From: Guillardia theta CCMP2712
Taxonomy: Eukaryota > Protista > Cryptophyta
DNA: 36,671 bases
Assembly (NCBI RefSeq): GCF_000315625.1
Contig: NW_005434653.1
Coordinates: 224,578-261,248, forward strand
Direction: 5' to 3'
Shown here: positions 5,486 through 17,554 of the stretch, piece by piece
How positions within the stretch are numbered: the stretch's first letter is position 1
Layout: the number at the start of each line of letters is the position of its first letter
Made by a program: the position numbers and the translations under genes
Notes under the pieces: generated by a model
What the model saw: the letters and a program-made list of their open reading frames with translations, nothing else
The model's database searches: none
What the model was told of the DNA's origin: nothing

Positions 5486-5785
5486 ATGACCCCCTGCCCC
5501 GCTTCCTTCCTCATCCTCCACGAGCAGTGGTCCCTCCCCCCTGCTACCCGTAGACCCAAGGCCTTCCGACTCTCCCCCGCCCAGCAAGCCTACGTCGACC
5601 GGATCGCCTCGCAGGCTCCCCCAAGACCGCCAAGCCGCCAAGCCGAGAGCCTAGCGACCAGCGAAGACGGGGCCATGGTGCTGCGCAACATTGCAGAGGC
5701 AGTGTGGAGGGCTCGGGACAAGGCTGAGAGGGAGGAGGGGCAAGAGGGGCGGGAGAGGACGGAGGGGAGGATCGTGGGGTACTGA
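5486..5785 (+). CDS. Intronless 99-aa orphan protein, copy 1
   Basis: ORF MTPCPASFLILHEQWSLPP...EGRIVGY. Identical protein to copy 3, with only three nucleotide differences, all silent. Confidence 0.7.
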   Translation: MTPCPASFLILHEQWSLPPATRRPKAFRLSPAQQAYVDRIASQAPPRPPSRQAESLATSEDGAMVLRNIAEAVWRARDKAEREEGQEGRERTEGRIVGY

Positions 5786-6537
5786 AGGAGAGAAACAAAT
5801 TACCGTAGGGAAGGGAAAATATTAATAAAACTCTTATTCCAAACTTTTATTGTGTATCATTGCCTGTTGTGGAGTCAAAAGGAAACTAGAACTTTTTCGG
5901 ATACGGGTATTAAGCGAGAGAGCAGGGATCTAAACGAATGATCAGGAGAGACTGAAGGAATCCAAATCTATTGGATCATGAGAAAAGTACCGACTCTGTC
6001 TTTCATATCTACAAACTGTTTGTTGCAGATACTAACCCATCGACGGTTCATGCAATTTATTCTCACCTTGTCGTTAATCAAAACTTTGATCACTTTCTTG
6101 ACCTCAAAGACCATGGACTCAATTCTATGAATGTAATAAAGCACCTCCAGGCATTTCTGGCTCGATGGTTTCAGGTCATTTTCCTATTGTAGGAGACTGT
6201 AGATTTTCGATTATTGCAGAAGATGCATATTGGGTAAGGGATCTTTCGAAACAATTGAAAATCACAAGCAATAAAGTTTTTTATGAGCCGTCAGAAAATG
6301 TAGTCAGATAACAATCAGATTTGCTCATTGGAGCTTGAACAAGGCAGAGCCCTGGAAGCTGAGCTCGAAAAAGAAGACAATGGCAAAAAGCAGAATCCAG
6401 TACAGATCACATGTCAAACAATTTATATAGAATTAACCCCAAAAACTTGATACGGGGTTACGCTCTCCCTCCCTCTACTTCATTACACAACGAACAAACT
6501 CCCCTACTTCTTTCATTCTTTCCTCTCCTCCTCTCCT

Positions 6538-6834
6538 TCAGTACCCCACGATCCTCCCCTCCGTCCTCTCCCGCCCCTCTTGCCCCTCCTCCCTCTCAGC
6601 CTTGTCCCAAGCCCTCCTGCAAACTGCCTCCGCGATGTTGCGCAGCACCATGGCCCCGTCTTCGCTGGTCGCTAGGCTCTCGGCTTGGCGGCTTGGCGGT
6701 CTTGGGGGAGCCTGCGAGGCGATCCGGTCGACGTAGGCTTGCTGGGCGGGAGAGAGTCGGAAGGCCTTGGGTCTACGGGTAGCAGGGGGGAGGGACCACT
6801 GCTCGTGGAGGATGAGGAAGGAAGCGGGGCACAT
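6538..6834 (-). CDS. Intronless 98-aa orphan protein, copy 2 (inverted)
   Basis: Reverse-complement copy with ATG retained, 6 nt missing after the ATG (MCPASF) and a net +3 nt change (AVCRRAW vs AVWRAR). The frame is preserved. Confidence 0.6.
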   Translation of the reverse strand: MCPASFLILHEQWSLPPATRRPKAFRLSPAQQAYVDRIASQAPPRPPSRQAESLATSEDGAMVLRNIAEAVCRRAWDKAEREEGQEGRERTEGRIVGY

Positions 6835-7169
6835 AATGGAAAAGAAATGCGATGATCTGAAGACAAGCTTCTAGAGTACAAGACTTGAAAACGAGGAGGA
6901 CGAGCACGTGCTTGGAGGGAACTTGTCAGACTGAATTTGGAGAGATTGAGGGAGGTGGGAACAGGGGAGGGAGGGCAGAAGCAGGGGAGGGAGAGAAGAA
7001 GGGAAGAAAGAAGGGCAGGCAGGCAGGCAGGCAGAGAGTGAACGAGCGATATGGGGGGATCACGGAGTTCATGATCAGGATCATGACATCAACTCTAGCT
7101 ATATTTTAAAATGCTTCCTTTACATTTCAAGTATCATGAACGAATTTCATTATTCTCCGAGCTTCACAT

Positions 7170-7600
7170 TCGGTACCGTTCACCGAGTCGTCCACGGAAA
7201 TTGCGTGACTCGTGAGTGATCAAAGAACGGACCCCACCCCCCACTTTCTAGTACCCCTCATACTCCAGTCTAACGCTAGGGTACTGCTTCCCAGTGACGG
7301 ACTGTCACTGAGCCTCGGAGCGTCAAGGCTTACAGGGACTTTCCTCCGACCGTCCCTTTACTTCGCACTGTTTCGTTGGCTCAGCCGGTGCCCCTTCAGC
7401 GGCAGGTGTCGCACTCAGCCAAAGAGTCGGTACGGTACTATCTGGGCATCTAGTCAGTGACCCAGTACGGCCCAAGTTCCAGGATCCCCCCGGGCCCGGG
7501 TCTCGGAACTCGCCGGCCGGGCGGGCCTGCCGGCGGCGAGTCAAGCCTGTATGCCCGGCGCCGCCGGCGTAACCCGGCGACGCACTGCCGCAGCCGCTAG
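7170..7600. repeat. ACCC patch plus CCGG/GTGAC palindrome-rich island
   Basis: Same word composition as 4201-4830, with a short ACCC patch at about 7225-7290. Lies between the divergent copies 2 and 3. Confidence 0.5.
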
Positions 7601-7744
7601 GATTCACAGACCAAATCTCGAGGTACGGAATCTGATTTTACTACACATCCCTGCATGTGGTAAACTGGAATGTAAACATGAAAGGCTCCTTCGGGACCGG
7701 AGCTGGCTAGAATCGCTCGATTCCTTCCGCCTCTTTCTCGCTTT

Positions 7745-7750
7745 TATAAA
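7745..7750 (+). promoter_or_regulatory. Putative TATA box of orphan gene copy 3
   Basis: TATAAA about 150 nt upstream of ATG 7896, followed by a pyrimidine-rich leader as in copy 1. Confidence 0.4.
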
Positions 7751-7895
7751 CCCCCGCTCCTCTCCCCTCCCTCCTGCCTTGCACACAGCCTCCTCGCTCC
7801 ATCTCCTCCGTGTTAGCCGTCACTCATCGTCACAGCCAGTCTCTCCTTCAGTGACTCCCTTCTCCACCGTTGCTGGTTCCTTCTGCTTGATCGAC

Positions 7896-8195
7896 ATGAC
7901 CCCCTGCCCCGCTTCCTTCCTCATCCTCCACGAGCAGTGGTCCCTCCCCCCTGCTACCCGTAGACCCAAGGCCTTCCGACTCTCCCCCGCCCAGCAAGCC
8001 TACGTCGACCGGATCGCCTCGCAGGCTCCCCCAAGACCGCCAAGCCGCCAAGCCGAGAGCCTAGCGACCAGCGAAGACGGGGCCATGGTGCTGCGCAACA
8101 TCGCGGAGGCAGTGTGGAGGGCTCGGGACAAGGCTGAGAGGGAGGAGGGGCAAGAGGGGCGGGAGAGGACGGAGGGGAGGATCGTGGGGTACTAA
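7896..8195 (+). CDS. Intronless 99-aa orphan protein, copy 3
   Basis: 297/300 nt identical to 5486-5785. Homology starts at the ATG, so the upstream extension of ORF 7551-8195 is probably not coding. Confidence 0.7.
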   Translation: MTPCPASFLILHEQWSLPPATRRPKAFRLSPAQQAYVDRIASQAPPRPPSRQAESLATSEDGAMVLRNIAEAVWRARDKAEREEGQEGRERTEGRIVGY

Positions 8196-8699
8196 AGGAG
8201 AGGAGGAGAGGAAAGGATGAAAGAAGTAGGGGAGTTTGTTTGTTGTGTGACAGTACGTGAGTGAGGGAATTTCCGATTATATACACATTTGTTTAATAAA
8301 TCGATTGATACGCAATCATTGCCTGAGAGTACTCTTAGACCAAACATTGAATTGGCTGTACAGAAAACATGGCAACAATACACGGGCAGCACAAGAACGT
8401 GTGAGTTGGCTGTTGCTTTCATTCGTCTCAAATTGATGAAATATCAATGCTGATGCTACATCGTGTACGAGCTGACTGGCAATTCTAGCCAGCTGCTGCA
8501 TGATAGCGAAAGCAATGAAGCAGCTCAGCTGTTTCACACCGCTCTGTGACAAACTCCGACGGTTTCTGAGATGCTCAGGAGCAGTACTGGTATGTGATTG
8601 CCGCGCGGCTGATACCGTTGGCTGATCGGAATTCTGACTGAATTTACTTGTCAAGTTTTCGTCTTGTTCTAACGTCAAAACATTCAATTCAAACAGTGA

Positions 8700-8987: not shown

Positions 8988-10991
8988 ATGGCTCGGCTGA
9001 GAGTGGGGCGGCGGTTCGAGGCGACGGCGGGGATGGCAGGAGCAGACGAGAAGATGGAGGAGCTGCTGGGGAGGAGCTGGAGAGACGCAAGGGTCTCGGG
9101 TGAGATCCTTGGGAAGGGGACGGGGAAGAGGGTGAGGGTGAGGTGGACAGTGTGCGGGGAGGCGGTGGAGGTTGAGGTCGGGGTAGACTCGCCGGTCTTC
9201 GCGTCCCTGGAAGACGAGGGCCATGGCAGCAGCGAGGTGAGGAGCGCGGTCAGGAGCAGCAGGGGGGCAGGAGGAGCCGCCGAGGATGAGATCATAGTCG
9301 AGACAGACTCTGACATGGTGACGGAGGACGAGGACTACACAGAGGCGGCAGGTCGAACCGGAGATGGCGGCTCAGGGTCCATGATTGACATGGTGGATGA
9401 GAAAGGGAGGCGCTGGCTGCTGGAGAAGAAGGAGGAGCTCGAAGACGCCAGAGTGCCCGTGGAGGAGAGCAGGCCGAGGCTGCTGTCGCAGGAGGTGAAC
9501 GTAACGGAGGAGGGGGAGCTAGCGGAGTATATCTCCTGCATGCTACCGGGAGAGCTTCTGCAGACCATCCTCCTCTGGACCAATCGAGAGATCGACGGGG
9601 GGAAGAAGCAGGTGGATCTCAAGGAGCTGAGGAAGTTCTTCGCCATACTGCTCGGTATGCTGATACAGCCTCGGTCCGAACTTGCCTCCTACTGGCTGTC
9701 CAGGGACGTCGGGGTAGTGCGCGCATGCGACTTTGGGAGGACATTCAAGATGACGCATGCTCGCTGGCTCTTCATCGCCCACCACATGCGCTTGTGGGAT
9801 CCTACGGAGGAGCCGCGCAGCATGCAGGACTGTGTGAGAAAGCTGGGGCCTGTGGTGGGGCTGTTTAACCAGAGCATGGGGAAGCTCATGCTGCCCGGCT
9901 CGACGGTGGCGTGTGGAGAGATTCCTCTCCTTCCTCCTCTGTCGGATTTCTGCGGGACAAAGTTCGTCGTGAGGGCGATGGTGGATTGCGCTTCCAAGGT
10001 GGTCGTGCGGGTGGCTGTGGAGATGAGGGAGGAGGGGGAGGCAGCGGGGGTGATGAAGCTGCTGCAAGGGCTTCACAGCAGCGTCGTGTATGCGGATCAA
10101 GCGCTGACTAGCATGGAAGCATGCGAGGCCGTCGTCAGCTCGGGCAACCATTTCTGCGGGGCGCTGAGAAGCGACGAGACTTTCTTGCCTGTCAGAGACT
10201 TGAGCAGCGGCGCGTTCGGGAAGGAAAGCGAGGTCGGGGCCACCAGGACGTTCAAGCTCAAGGAGGACTTCTCTCGGCCGCTCTACTGCCATGCCTGGAA
10301 CTTTCGCTCAAGGAGGGGCGAAAGGGCCTCGGCAGAATGCTTCCTGTCCTCCTTCCCGGCCTTCAAGCCTGCTCAAGCGTACACGAGGAGCAGGCAGGCG
10401 TTCGATGCCAAGTATGGGATCATCAGGAGAAACAGGGTCGTGCCACAGAGCCGGATGGTGGCCGAGCATCGTGCGGCCATGGAGGCGCTCTCGCTGAAGC
10501 ATGCCGACCTGCTGCAGACGATTCGCAGCATGTGGAAGCCCAGGAGCGTCGAGGTGTACGTCTTCCAGCTGCTCCTCCACCTGATGATCACCAACGCCTT
10601 CCTGTGCTTCAAGTACTTCGACAAGGATGCAGCTGGGGTGGAGGTGGAGACGTTCCTCAATGCCATTGCCTTCAGCTTCGCAGAGAAGAGCGACTGTAGG
10701 GGCATCCTGCAGTCGTGCAAGAGGAAGCGGGAGGAGCAGGAGCAAGAGCAGGAGCAGGAGGACGGGGGTTGCAAGCCTGAACTGATCCGGAACTCCGGGT
10801 TTGGCAACCGCCATCACTGCGGCAGATGCAAAGTTTGCCCGGAGGGACAGAAGAGTTACTTCTTCTGCCGCAGATGCTCCGTGCTGTACCCCGGGGACCA
10901 CAAGAAAACCAAGCTCTTCTACGTGTGCGGTCCTGGGACTGGCAGGGACTGCATGATGAAGCACCTGAAGAGAACGATGTCGGAAGGATGA
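8988..10991 (+). CDS. piggyBac transposase-derived protein (PGBD-like, DDE_Tnp_1_7-type), probably domesticated and catalytically inactive
   Basis: Single 667-aa ORF with piggyBac hallmarks in order: LLQTILLWTN, DLKELRKFFAILLGM, SYW, DFGRTFKMTHARW..I.HHMRL, FNQSM...PGSTVACGE (D1 site), VYADQALTS (D2), HFCGALR, HRAAMEALS (D3 site), LMITNAFLCFK and a C-terminal CxxC-CxxC-C-C-H domain. Recognised by motif only; no database search was run. Confidence 0.85.
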   Translation: MARLRVGRRFEATAGMAGADEKMEELLGRSWRDARVSGEILGKGTGKRVRVRWTVCGEAVEVEVGVDSPVFASLEDEGHGSSEVRSAVRSSRGAGGAAEDEIIVETDSDMVTEDEDYTEAAGRTGDGGSGSMIDMVDEKGRRWLLEKKEELEDARVPVEESRPRLLSQEVNVTEEGELAEYISCMLPGELLQTILLWTNREIDGGKKQVDLKELRKFFAILLGMLIQPRSELASYWLSRDVGVVRACDFGRTFKMTHARWLFIAHHMRLWDPTEEPRSMQDCVRKLGPVVGLFNQSMGKLMLPGSTVACGEIPLLPPLSDFCGTKFVVRAMVDCASKVVVRVAVEMREEGEAAGVMKLLQGLHSSVVYADQALTSMEACEAVVSSGNHFCGALRSDETFLPVRDLSSGAFGKESEVGATRTFKLKEDFSRPLYCHAWNFRSRRGERASAECFLSSFPAFKPAQAYTRSRQAFDAKYGIIRRNRVVPQSRMVAEHRAAMEALSLKHADLLQTIRSMWKPRSVEVYVFQLLLHLMITNAFLCFKYFDKDAAGVEVETFLNAIAFSFAEKSDCRGILQSCKRKREEQEQEQEQEDGGCKPELIRNSGFGNRHHCGRCKVCPEGQKSYFFCRRCSVLYPGDHKKTKLFYVCGPGTGRDCMMKHLKRTMSEG

Positions 10992-11253: not shown

Positions 11254-11661
11254 TCAGGAGGGAGAAGATGGAGAGTGAAGGTTGCGCTCAATGTGCTGGA
11301 CGACCAACATGGGGTCTCTGGTGGAAGGAAACGGCTGTGAGATTTTGACCTCCACCTCCTCCACCTCTACGTCGATGACGATACTTCCCCTGACCAGGAG
11401 GGGTCTTCCCTCCTCCTCCCTTGGGTCGCAGAGCTTGAAGTAGCCCACGAGCAGGAGGACAAGCCCCCCGTCGCCGGGTGCGAGGACGTCGATGTAGTGG
11501 AGCCCAGCCTGCATGACCTGGAGGAAGGAGGGCGTGAGAGGAGGAGAGTGGGGGATGCTAGGACGGAACTAATAGGGAGGGAGGGGATAGAAGAACAACC
11601 ACTCCCGCCGCCACCAGCGGCAGCAGGAAAGGAGGAAGAGGAGCAGGAAGACGCAAAGAAA

Positions 11662-15900: not shown

Positions 15901-17039
15901 AGCACCTCCCACTCCTTACCTTTCTTGTAAGTCGGTGATGATCTTTGCTTGCCGCCTCGACCTGACAAACTCTCAGCGGTTTGTGATCGAACGCTCACAG
16001 GAAAACATCCCGTCCAGTCTGACCTCTCTCTCTCAATCTCCTCCCGCTGAGTTTGCTGCACGCTGGCAGATTCTTCCTGCACCTCCTGCGTTTTCACTTC
16101 ACTTCCTCTCAACGTCTCACGCAGTCCACCGTCAATTTGCTTTCCTCCGCCATGAACGTCTCGATCATCGTCGAATCATCGGATGCTGGATCAATCTCGC
16201 TGCCCTTGTCCTCTGAAGATGTCCTGCTTATACATGCCGATCAATACTGCTCCATTGCCTGTTCTGGCGGCTTCAACAACGCATACCTTTGGTCTTGACC
16301 TTTGTGTTTATCCTCGGGTCTTCTTTCTTGTTGCAATATTCTCACATCCTGCGGCAAAGGGAGCATATCGTCAACAAAAGTCCCTCCCTCCTCTTCCTCC
16401 TCAGTTTCTCCGTCTTCAGTCACTCAGTCTCCCCCCACTGTCCTCTTCCTTCCCCTCCAAATCCCTCACCTTCAACCAAGTCATCTCCGGCCCGTAATAA
16501 TGCCCTCCGCGAATCAGGAACCCACTGAGGGAGGAGAGCGTCAGCAGCAGCTCCTCCTCTGTGCATGAGCCCTCGCTGATCGCATGTTTCCAACTGGGCG
16601 GGTCCAGCGCAACCTCTACCTCCTGGTCGTTGGACCAGGGAGCGAACAGGTCCGTCCTGATGAGCGTGAGGTTGTGCAGGTCAGAGACCAGCACGACGTC
16701 CTCCATCTTGATCGGGTCCCTTCCCGCGCTGTTCGCATGGAAGTGGCCCATAGAGAACTTGATGCTTCCTTGATATGCCTCCCGCATGTCACCCAGGAAC
16801 TTGGGAGGAGCAGAGAAGAACCATACAGCCTGTCCCTCGTCCGACCCTGTGAGGTACTCGCCCTCAACCTGGAGGTGTACATCCTCCCCTAACACCAACC
16901 ATCCGTCCTCTCCTTCACCGAAATCGCTGGCCGCTAAGATCGTTTCCCTTACCAGCTGCCCCTCCCTCCGGGGGAACCTTTGCCCTCCGACTCCACAGAG
17001 GAGCAAGAGTCCTATGACTATCCATTCCGACGCTCTCAT
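11254..17039 (-). CDS. Signal peptide + laminin IV type A (laminin B) domain + coiled coil + membrane-spanning region, large multi-exon gene
   Basis: Exon 1 reads MRASEWIVIGLLLLCGVGG (signal) ...WFFSAPPKFLGDMREAYQGSIKFSM...LSGFLIRGGHYYGPEMTWLK (laminin IV-A motifs). Downstream exons give a coiled coil (IEMQEENDRLKTIVAE-LEEANLRYNQAAKERSNKEQE-CQRHLRDKESLLEDVKEKLE...), hydrophobic segments (IHLLLVPYLLLLLALPF, VVILMFWICMLAY, SLVLFLYGTVIVLHFLSFF) and a final exon ending ERNLHSPSSPS* at 11254. The region could instead be two genes. Confidence 0.7.
12210..12290. repeat. (GCAGGA)n hexanucleotide microsatellite in intron
   Basis: Visible. The same motif occurs at 11664-11706 and 21342-21442. Confidence 0.95.
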
Positions 17040-17554
17040 CCTACCTTGCCGTTGCTGGTGTGGTTTTACATGGGTCTCGGAGTAGATACCACCTCAGCGG
17101 ACATTAATTCGACTACGTTTTGTGCGGAAATTCCCCTTCTCCTCTGCGCTTGTTTGCTCTTTGTCTTAGTTCCGCCATCGTTCAACAAACCTGCCCATTC
17201 AACCCGACGTATGAGATTGGAGAGCACAGAATCATTTTGCATAACAGGGCAACGCATCACAAAGGATTACATCAACCTGAGAATGAGCACCATTGCAACG
17301 AGGCAGAGTCTATTACATCACACGGACCACAGCACAACGAGGTGTGATCTTGCAGAGCCGATGGCGAGGAGGAGGAGGAGCTGTGGCCGTAGAGAGGAGA
17401 GCATGGAAGAGAGCATGAAAGAGAGCATGGGAGAGAGCATGGAACAACAATCATCGTAATCCTCCCCCTCTCACCAGCCGCATCGTCAGTTGATGGATTT
17501 TCACCGATGATGTCAAGACAGTTATTTCCGTTACTTATTACTAGTAATATTGCC

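Follow-up and report, generated by a model that had tools for sequence, protein, structure and literature searches.

Is the long piggyBac-like open reading frame (ORF) at this locus of the cryptophyte alga Guillardia theta CCMP2712 a gene of its host, or is it what remains of a transposon? The frame occupies positions 8988–10991 of the forward strand of the window, which here means the whole 36,671-nucleotide stretch that was analysed (contig NW_005434653.1, positions 224,578 to 261,248, assembly GCF_000315625.1). Domesticated piggyBac genes have been characterised in vertebrates (PGBD1-5) and in ciliates (PiggyMac, the PgmL proteins, and Tpb). A preliminary description of the window, made without database searches, had read this ORF as a domesticated, catalytically dead piggyBac host gene. 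The analysis reported here supports that reading: the catalytic triad is broken, the locus is single copy and lacks transposon ends, and an orthologue is present in Hanusia phi. Of the refuting findings listed in that description, none turned up among those that were examined. In our view, the host probably recruited a piggyBac transposase here as a gene of its own (a "PGBD"-type gene), whose catalytically dead product would act as a non-catalytic nuclear protein that binds chromatin or DNA.

Family membership and catalytic residues

The ORF starts with ATG and encodes 667 amino acids followed by a stop codon. It runs uninterrupted for 2 kb, as had been described, and it is the longest open frame of the window, with 674 codons from stop to stop compared with 418 for the runner-up. 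When the window was shuffled 200 times, the longest frame reached a mean of 213 codons and a maximum of 356. The probability of 667 stop-free codons, computed from the base composition of the ORF itself, is about 2e-11.

The encoded protein was compared with the Pfam family DDE_Tnp_1_7 (PF13843), a HMMER check suggested in the preliminary description. This analysis revealed a significant match with an E-value of 2.4e-23 and a score of 83.5 bits (cut-off 22.4), in which residues 183–538 align with positions 7–349 of the 349-position profile. An AlphaFold2 model of the 667-residue protein was built on a 30-sequence alignment and had a mean predicted local distance difference test score (pLDDT) of 78.5. 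Within the transposase core, most 10-residue blocks had a mean pLDDT of at least 85, and some were in the range of 64–81. The best matches of the model in a Foldseek search of the PDB were the T. ni piggyBac strand-transfer complex (6x67_C, E-value 6.4e-17) and piggyBat (9c0f, E-value 3e-16), followed by Tn5, and the identity to T. ni piggyBac and piggyBat in the structural alignments was only 12–14%. The profile match and the structural matches agree with the piggyBac motif series that had been recognised in the ORF by eye, and the model confidently predicts an RNase H-like fold that, like the fold of the experimentally solved piggyBac proteins, carries an insertion domain. By sequence, piggyBac and piggyBat were reached in the PDB only with the profile of the 30-sequence clade; searches with the single protein, with a profile of the two orthologues, with a paralogue from the same genome (C1, described below), or with the cysteine-rich domain alone gave nothing useful.

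The catalytic positions were determined in an alignment (A3) of 30 full-length members, for which the relatives were gathered by an exhaustive HMMER search. The A3 profile matches piggyBat 9c0f (E-value 4e-37) and T. ni piggyBac 6x67 (E-value 2.4e-30), and its columns for the three catalytic aspartates (D1, D2, and D3, together DDD) fall on the T. ni motifs TIDEQ (D268), TCDNWFTS (D346), and GGVDTLDQ (D447), respectively. Most other members of A3 keep D/D/D. In the protein studied here, the D1 position is occupied by Gly310 (VACGE, codon at 9915–9917 of the forward strand), D2 is retained as Asp370 (VYADQ, codon at 10095–10097, forward strand), and the D3 position is occupied by Ser502 (EALSLKH, codon at 10491–10493, forward strand). 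The Hanusia orthologue also has G at D1 (VACGD), D at D2, and S at D3. The triad Gly310/Asp370/Ser502 and its codon coordinates had been assigned by eye in the preliminary description, and all of them proved correct on the A3 profile; an intact DDD triad, which was named there as a finding that would speak against the dead-transposase reading, did not appear in the alignment. The RKP/KxG motif after D1 had been reported as unrecognisable. Alignment A3 shows that the RKPxxxG motif is lost and that 16–20 residues directly after D1 are deleted.

A single Asp mutation abolishes the activity of T. ni piggyBac in vitro (Mitra 2008, as cited in PMC6143343). Since both D1 and D3 are replaced in the piggyBac-derived protein, we infer on firm grounds from its sequence that catalysis has been lost. 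An alternative is that the protein is still an enzyme and cleaves DNA by means of non-canonical acidic residues, as is claimed for human PGBD5. It could draw on the retained D2 (Asp370), on the acidic residue next after the D1 position, which is Glu311 here and Asp in Hanusia, and on the confidently predicted RNase H-like fold. We find this very improbable, given that two of the three metal ligands are now Gly and Ser, without equivalent coordination, and that the beta1-beta2 loop and the RKP motif adjoining the active site are deleted; the effect of single Asp mutations on T. ni piggyBac stands against it as well.

Copy number, transposon ends and the Hanusia orthologue

The copy number was determined in the whole genome assembly (87.1 Mb, 669 contigs). 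At the DNA level the 2.6-kb locus is single copy, and its other matches are only simple repeats that involve the Glu/Gln tract and the purine-rich 3′ flank. At the protein level, the nearest paralogue in the genome has 26% identity. Thus, multiple near-identical copies flanked by TTAA and terminal inverted repeats (TIRs), which by the preliminary description would argue for a mobile element, are not what the genome contains for this locus.

The gene has also lost the transposon ends. As had been noted earlier, it is accompanied neither by element-type inverted repeats nor by TTAA duplications: there is no TTAA-flanked pair of inverted ends within 8 kb of the gene and not a single TTAA in the 6 kb downstream of its stop, and the inverted repeats that do flank it consist only of purine/pyrimidine low complexity. 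The genome harbours a resident piggyBac-like element family, whose TTAA+TIR pattern has 0 occurrences in the window, even with three mismatches allowed. This element served as a positive control for the negative result at the gene: its own ends were recovered with the identical scan.

Orthologues in related species, whose search had been recommended from the start, were sought among 5.8 billion protein clusters and 1.84 billion representatives. The sole close relative was a Hanusia phi protein from EukProt (P0002, 672 amino acids), with 69–71% identity at 100% coverage. The two proteins are colinear from a shared first Met to a shared last residue, which supports the absence of introns in the Guillardia gene. 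Only five indels separate them, all small and in frame, and most of these lie in N-terminal stretches that are of low complexity or poorly conserved. Word-based homology searches with the whole protein and with residues 180–575 found nothing beyond the query and the Hanusia orthologue. The exhaustive HMMER search gave 65 hits, of which the next best after the orthologue had 27–28% identity, and these wider relatives come mostly from short environmental contigs, with one from Phytophthora palmivora.

The maintenance of the frame was examined by simulating unconstrained substitution of the coding sequence down to 71% amino acid identity. This corresponds to about 0.16 changes per site and introduced a mean of 8.6 stops (minimum 2), so that the frame remained open in 0 of 1,000 runs. 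The frame has therefore been maintained in a non-neutral manner since the split of Guillardia and Hanusia. Identity to Hanusia also varies with the segment: the cysteine-rich domain has 92%, the core 68–75%, the N-terminal domain 71%, and the linkers 58–60% (chi-square p 1.5e-4). As indirect tests, the simulation and the domain-structured conservation favour constraint on the piggyBac-derived gene. In the phylogenetic tree, a long stem (1.87 changes per site) leads to the Guillardia–Hanusia pair, whose tips are short (0.21 and 0.16); this shape fits a phase of rapid change early on and constraint thereafter.

A non-functional relic, that is, an immobilised and decaying copy whose frame is open by chance or youth, would likewise present a broken triad and missing ends, and the existence of only one orthologue also fits it. 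This explanation is strongly disfavoured and is the least probable of those considered here. The 667 codons are open in two genera at about 30% amino acid divergence, where no neutral simulation left the frame open; all indels are in frame; conservation follows the domains; and G/D/S is fixed in both species. The codon usage speaks against a relic as well. The GC content at codon positions 1, 2, and 3 is 0.58, 0.44, and 0.80, which indicates strong coding periodicity, and the value at the third position (GC3) is host-like, since two neighbouring host exons have 0.71–0.75 and the mobile element has 0.41.

Domain architecture and proposed role

The protein has kept the whole piggyBac architecture, which consists of an N-terminal barrel, an acidic linker, an RNase H-like core, as well as a cysteine-rich zinc domain at the C-terminus. 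The first 75 residues (8988–9212, forward strand) are confidently predicted to form a small beta-barrel domain, tentatively of Tudor/SH3-like type. In the model of the whole protein, pLDDT was 78 for the first ten residues and 91–94 for residues 11–70, and the domain modelled alone gave 82.8. Its best structural matches were Tudor domains, namely those of SETDB1 (7c9n, Z 5.6), SMN, PHF20L1, and TDRD3, all with Z below 6, which is too low for such matches to be reliable. Leads from the Atlas pointed to Tudor/Agenet with every score below 0.9, which is sub-threshold, and Pfam was blank for this domain. The barrel is conserved in many relatives, and its profile also matches copies of the mobile element and the C181, C42, C17, and C1 paralogues; therefore, it dates back to the ancestor of this piggyBac clade, and its presence does not stem from domestication. 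The same barrel of about 70 residues was found in environmental proteins that lack a transposase core (P0039, P0046, P0059, and P0065). In P0039 it is fused directly to a piggyBac-type cysteine-rich domain, and in P0065 it is accompanied by Cys repeats of the CKECGGS type. This distribution suggests that the barrel is a mobile protein module.

The barrel is followed by an acidic linker (residues 76–180; 9213–9527, forward strand), which is disordered at residues 77–131 (pLDDT below 50) and has values of about 53–78 in the remainder, with two short strands at 134–136 and 142–145. It is 60% identical to the Hanusia sequence and carries several of the indels. Together with a tract at residues 576–594, which is 58% identical, it is the least conserved part of the protein. 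The transposase core (residues 183–538; 9534–10601, forward strand) comprises an N-terminal helical part, the RNase H-like fold, and the insertion domain. Downstream of it, a basic KRKR patch and then a Glu/Gln low-complexity tract were read from the sequence (residues 576–594; 10713–10769, forward strand). The patch precedes the C-terminal domain, is conserved in Hanusia as KRKRE, and is a possible nuclear localisation signal.

The C-terminal cysteine-rich domain (residues 595–667; 10770–10988, forward strand) is the most conserved segment relative to Hanusia. Its conserved Cys and His residues (C614, C617, C627, C630, C647, C655, and H659), which vary little or not at all within the clade, point to a putative two-zinc cross-brace finger. 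With an E-value of 4.4e-4, the clade profile matches PDB entry 6zop_A, a chain of 84 residues whose deposited name is DDE_Tnp_1_7 domain-containing protein; the PiggyMac cysteine-rich domain paper (PMC8086355) mentions 6ZOP. According to that paper, the cysteine-rich domain of T. ni piggyBac binds repeats within the element ends, and that of PiggyMac does not bind DNA and weakly binds the histone H3 tail (PMC8086355).

From these data, the protein probably has a role as a chromatin- or DNA-binding scaffold. It would be unable to cut or join DNA and would act as a non-catalytic binder in the nucleus. Binding to DNA or to histone tails would be supplied by the constrained cysteine-rich domain and perhaps also by the Tudor-like barrel, and the dead transposase core may serve as an oligomerisation scaffold, either in a homodimer or in company with further piggyBac-derived proteins that this genome encodes. 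Such a scaffold could regulate genes or transposons, or it could act architecturally alongside a paralogue that is catalytic.

Several points weigh against this interpretation. There is a single orthologue, and it comes from a closely related genus, so that the age of domestication is poorly bounded. The Hanusia protein was predicted within a transcriptome resource (we take the EukProt set of this species to be transcriptome-derived) and is hence an ORF by construction. The host side of the GC3 comparison consists of two exons only, a small sample. The Tudor assignment of the modelled N-terminal barrel is weak, with Z of 5.6 or less. Finally, residual metal binding by the retained Asp370 and Glu311 is formally conceivable.

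The resident element, paralogues and known systems

PF13843 matches at least 12 loci in the G. theta genome. The search for paralogues with an intact DDD triad, another check proposed in the preliminary description, was successful and yielded the mobile TTAA/TIR element family and one TIR-less gene, C181. Copies of the resident element lie on contigs C8 (L028:305-3228), C147 (L025:6768-9503), C19 (L026:4583-9387), and C88 (L027), and have 88–99% nucleotide identity over about 2.7–2.9 kb. At one side the element is bounded by TTAA followed by CCTTTAAACGACAAA, and at the other side by the inverted counterpart followed by TTAA. This TTAA+TIR pattern occurs at 18 sites in the genome compared with 0 for the reversed control. 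The element's transposase is DDD-intact, contains one intron, and has the low GC3 given above. The family was apparently active recently.

The other paralogues are diverse. The C1 gene (L010:691-2760, reverse strand) is intronless; its D1 and D2 positions hold Arg and Asn, respectively, and no Asp aligns with D3; no TTAA/TIR pair was found within 4.5 kb of it, and its full-length Hanusia phi orthologue (P0006) is 62% identical. The C17 gene (L017) has an E/N/E triad, one intron, and a full-length Hanusia phi orthologue (P0011) with 58–61% identity. Together with the gene in the window, there are at least three degenerate-triad paralogous lineages with a Hanusia orthologue. The C181 gene (L013:289-2697, forward strand) is single copy at the DNA level, with D/D/D, and has 66–68% nucleotide identity to the mobile family. 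A single intron, which contains an in-frame stop, interrupts it just after D1, and no TTAA/TIR pair lies within 4.5 kb. C181 is a candidate for a catalytically competent domesticated transposase. The intron-bearing paralogues were analysed exon by exon. In the clade-B paralogues (L013, L017, L018, L020, and L012), the Pfam matches break at profile positions of about 138–151, just past the D1 motif, which is consistent with one intron position common to the mobile family and its TIR-less relatives. In the tree, a separate clade with 100% support unites C181, the mobile family, C17, C135, and C42; the gene in the window and C1 group with environmental DDD-intact sequences. A sister relationship of these two had 94% support in the Shimodaira–Hasegawa-like approximate likelihood ratio test (SH-aLRT), but it was flagged as a possible long-branch artefact and was not relied on.

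The resident element and the gene share their protein architecture, including the N-terminal barrel and the motif of the cysteine-rich domain. They differ in other respects: the element is multi-copy, has TTAA and inverted ends, DDD, an intron, and a GC3 of 0.41, whereas the gene is single copy, without ends, intronless, and G/D/S, with a GC3 of 0.80. Their coexistence raises the possibility that the dead transposase is a transposon-control factor, a host- or element-derived repressor that would act on the resident elements by binding their ends or by poisoning their transposase through heterodimers. A DDD-intact family with defined ends is present as a possible target, the most constrained part of the protein is a domain of the DNA-binding type, and there is a precedent in PGBD3, which retains DNA binding to piggyBac-related sequences (as summarised in PMC6143343). 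Nevertheless, the resident transposase falls in the other of the two clades, its C8 copy has an exon-2 frame with only 18% identity to the matching part of the protein, and there is no DNA similarity between the gene and the element. The cysteine-rich domains of the two differ substantially as well, and the long stem suggests that the gene is much older than the present element copies. We regard such a control function as unlikely.

The paralogues with broken triads lead to a second possibility, a more specific version of the scaffold interpretation and in no contradiction with it. The dead proteins of this gene, C1, and C17 might assemble with the DDD-intact C181 as architectural subunits that position a DNA-cleaving complex, as in Paramecium, where PgmL proteins occur with PiggyMac (PMC6143343). 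PgmL1-5 are piggyBac-derived host genes with an incomplete DDD that retain the transposase core and the cysteine-rich domain; several divergent dead paralogues exist beside a DDD-intact member in one genome, and their core evolves faster than in the active member (PMC6143343). The three or more degenerate-triad lineages, each with a Hanusia orthologue, and C181, as a single-copy, intron-bearing D/D/D gene without nearby ends, would fit such an arrangement. The differences from the ciliate are nonetheless considerable. This gene and C1 do not belong to the fully supported clade of C181, and of the triad this gene has only D2 left, whereas in PgmL4 it is D1 and D3 that remain. The alga is not known to have a split of germline and soma or programmed DNA elimination. 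No report of programmed DNA elimination in cryptophytes was found in the literature searched, and we know of none. Architectural subunits of this kind are a minority possibility, which we hold to be rather unlikely, although the best of the alternatives. Its most far-reaching form would be a ciliate-like multi-subunit piggyBac machine in cryptophytes, composed of C181 and the dead proteins of this gene, C1, and C17 and targeted to chromatin by the Tudor-like and cysteine-rich domains. It would carry out programmed DNA cleavage or excision, e.g., element removal or a life-cycle-linked rearrangement. We consider this improbable.

The host-gene interpretation also finds parallels in vertebrates. 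Like the gene described here, PGBD1, PGBD2, and PGBD3 are host genes present in a single copy and lacking TIRs; their piggyBac core has lost intact catalytic residues, and they are conserved between species. Unlike them, the cryptophyte gene represents an independent domestication in a distant eukaryotic lineage, and its N-terminal module is a small Tudor-like barrel; PGBD1 carries a SCAN domain and PGBD3 is a fusion with CSB. The PGBD1-3 proteins were absent among the 65 HMMER hits, and no sequence relationship closer than the family level was seen. With T. ni piggyBac and Myotis piggyBat (6x67 and 9c0f), the protein shares the Pfam family, the overall fold, the order of the motifs, and the C-terminal cysteine-rich domain. 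Both of the latter are active transposases that their elements encode, with DDD, TIRs, and TTAA duplications, in contrast to the G/D/S triad, the deleted loop, and the missing ends observed here. Triad-deficient domesticated piggyBac genes are thus a known kind, exemplified by PGBD1-3 and PgmL1-5, and what appears to be new is the occurrence in a cryptophyte alga. A survey of the piggyBac superfamily (PMC5381638) mentions neither cryptophytes nor Guillardia, and our literature search found no report of domesticated piggyBac genes in either.

In the G. theta genome, several stages coexist: an element family that was apparently active recently, a TIR-less DDD-intact paralogue, and at least three degenerate-triad paralogues conserved in Hanusia. 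It is a compact natural system for asking how transposases get recruited and why dead cores are kept. It also offers, in a cryptophyte, a testable entry point to assemblies of the Pgm/PgmL type outside ciliates. If the clade-wide N-terminal barrel were a chromatin reader, it would be a piggyBac counterpart of chromodomain-guided integration.

The surroundings of the gene were inspected as well. Upstream of it lies a repeat of about 300–350 nt (repeats of 216–347 nt within 5495–8248) in three copies (5495–5792, 6485–6831, and 7905–8248) that are 97–99% identical, one of them inverted relative to the other two. The repeat is unique to this site in the genome and contains an open frame without a Pfam match. 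The three copies were considered as possible element ends and were rejected, as all of them are upstream and thus do not flank the ORF on both sides, and as the rest of the genome contains no further copy. On the other side of the gene, the last exon and stop of a convergent host gene were identified on the reverse strand (11254–11568; open frame 11257–11568, stop 11254–11256), with a GC3 of 0.75. Its stop is 263 nt past that of the piggyBac-derived gene, in agreement with the distance of about 260 nt given in the preliminary description. A Pfam search of the neighbouring open frames was uninformative for all but one of them, and the convergent exon had no match. The exception was an exon-sized open frame at 16419–17093 of the reverse strand, which matches Laminin_B (PF00052) with an E-value of 1.7e-13.

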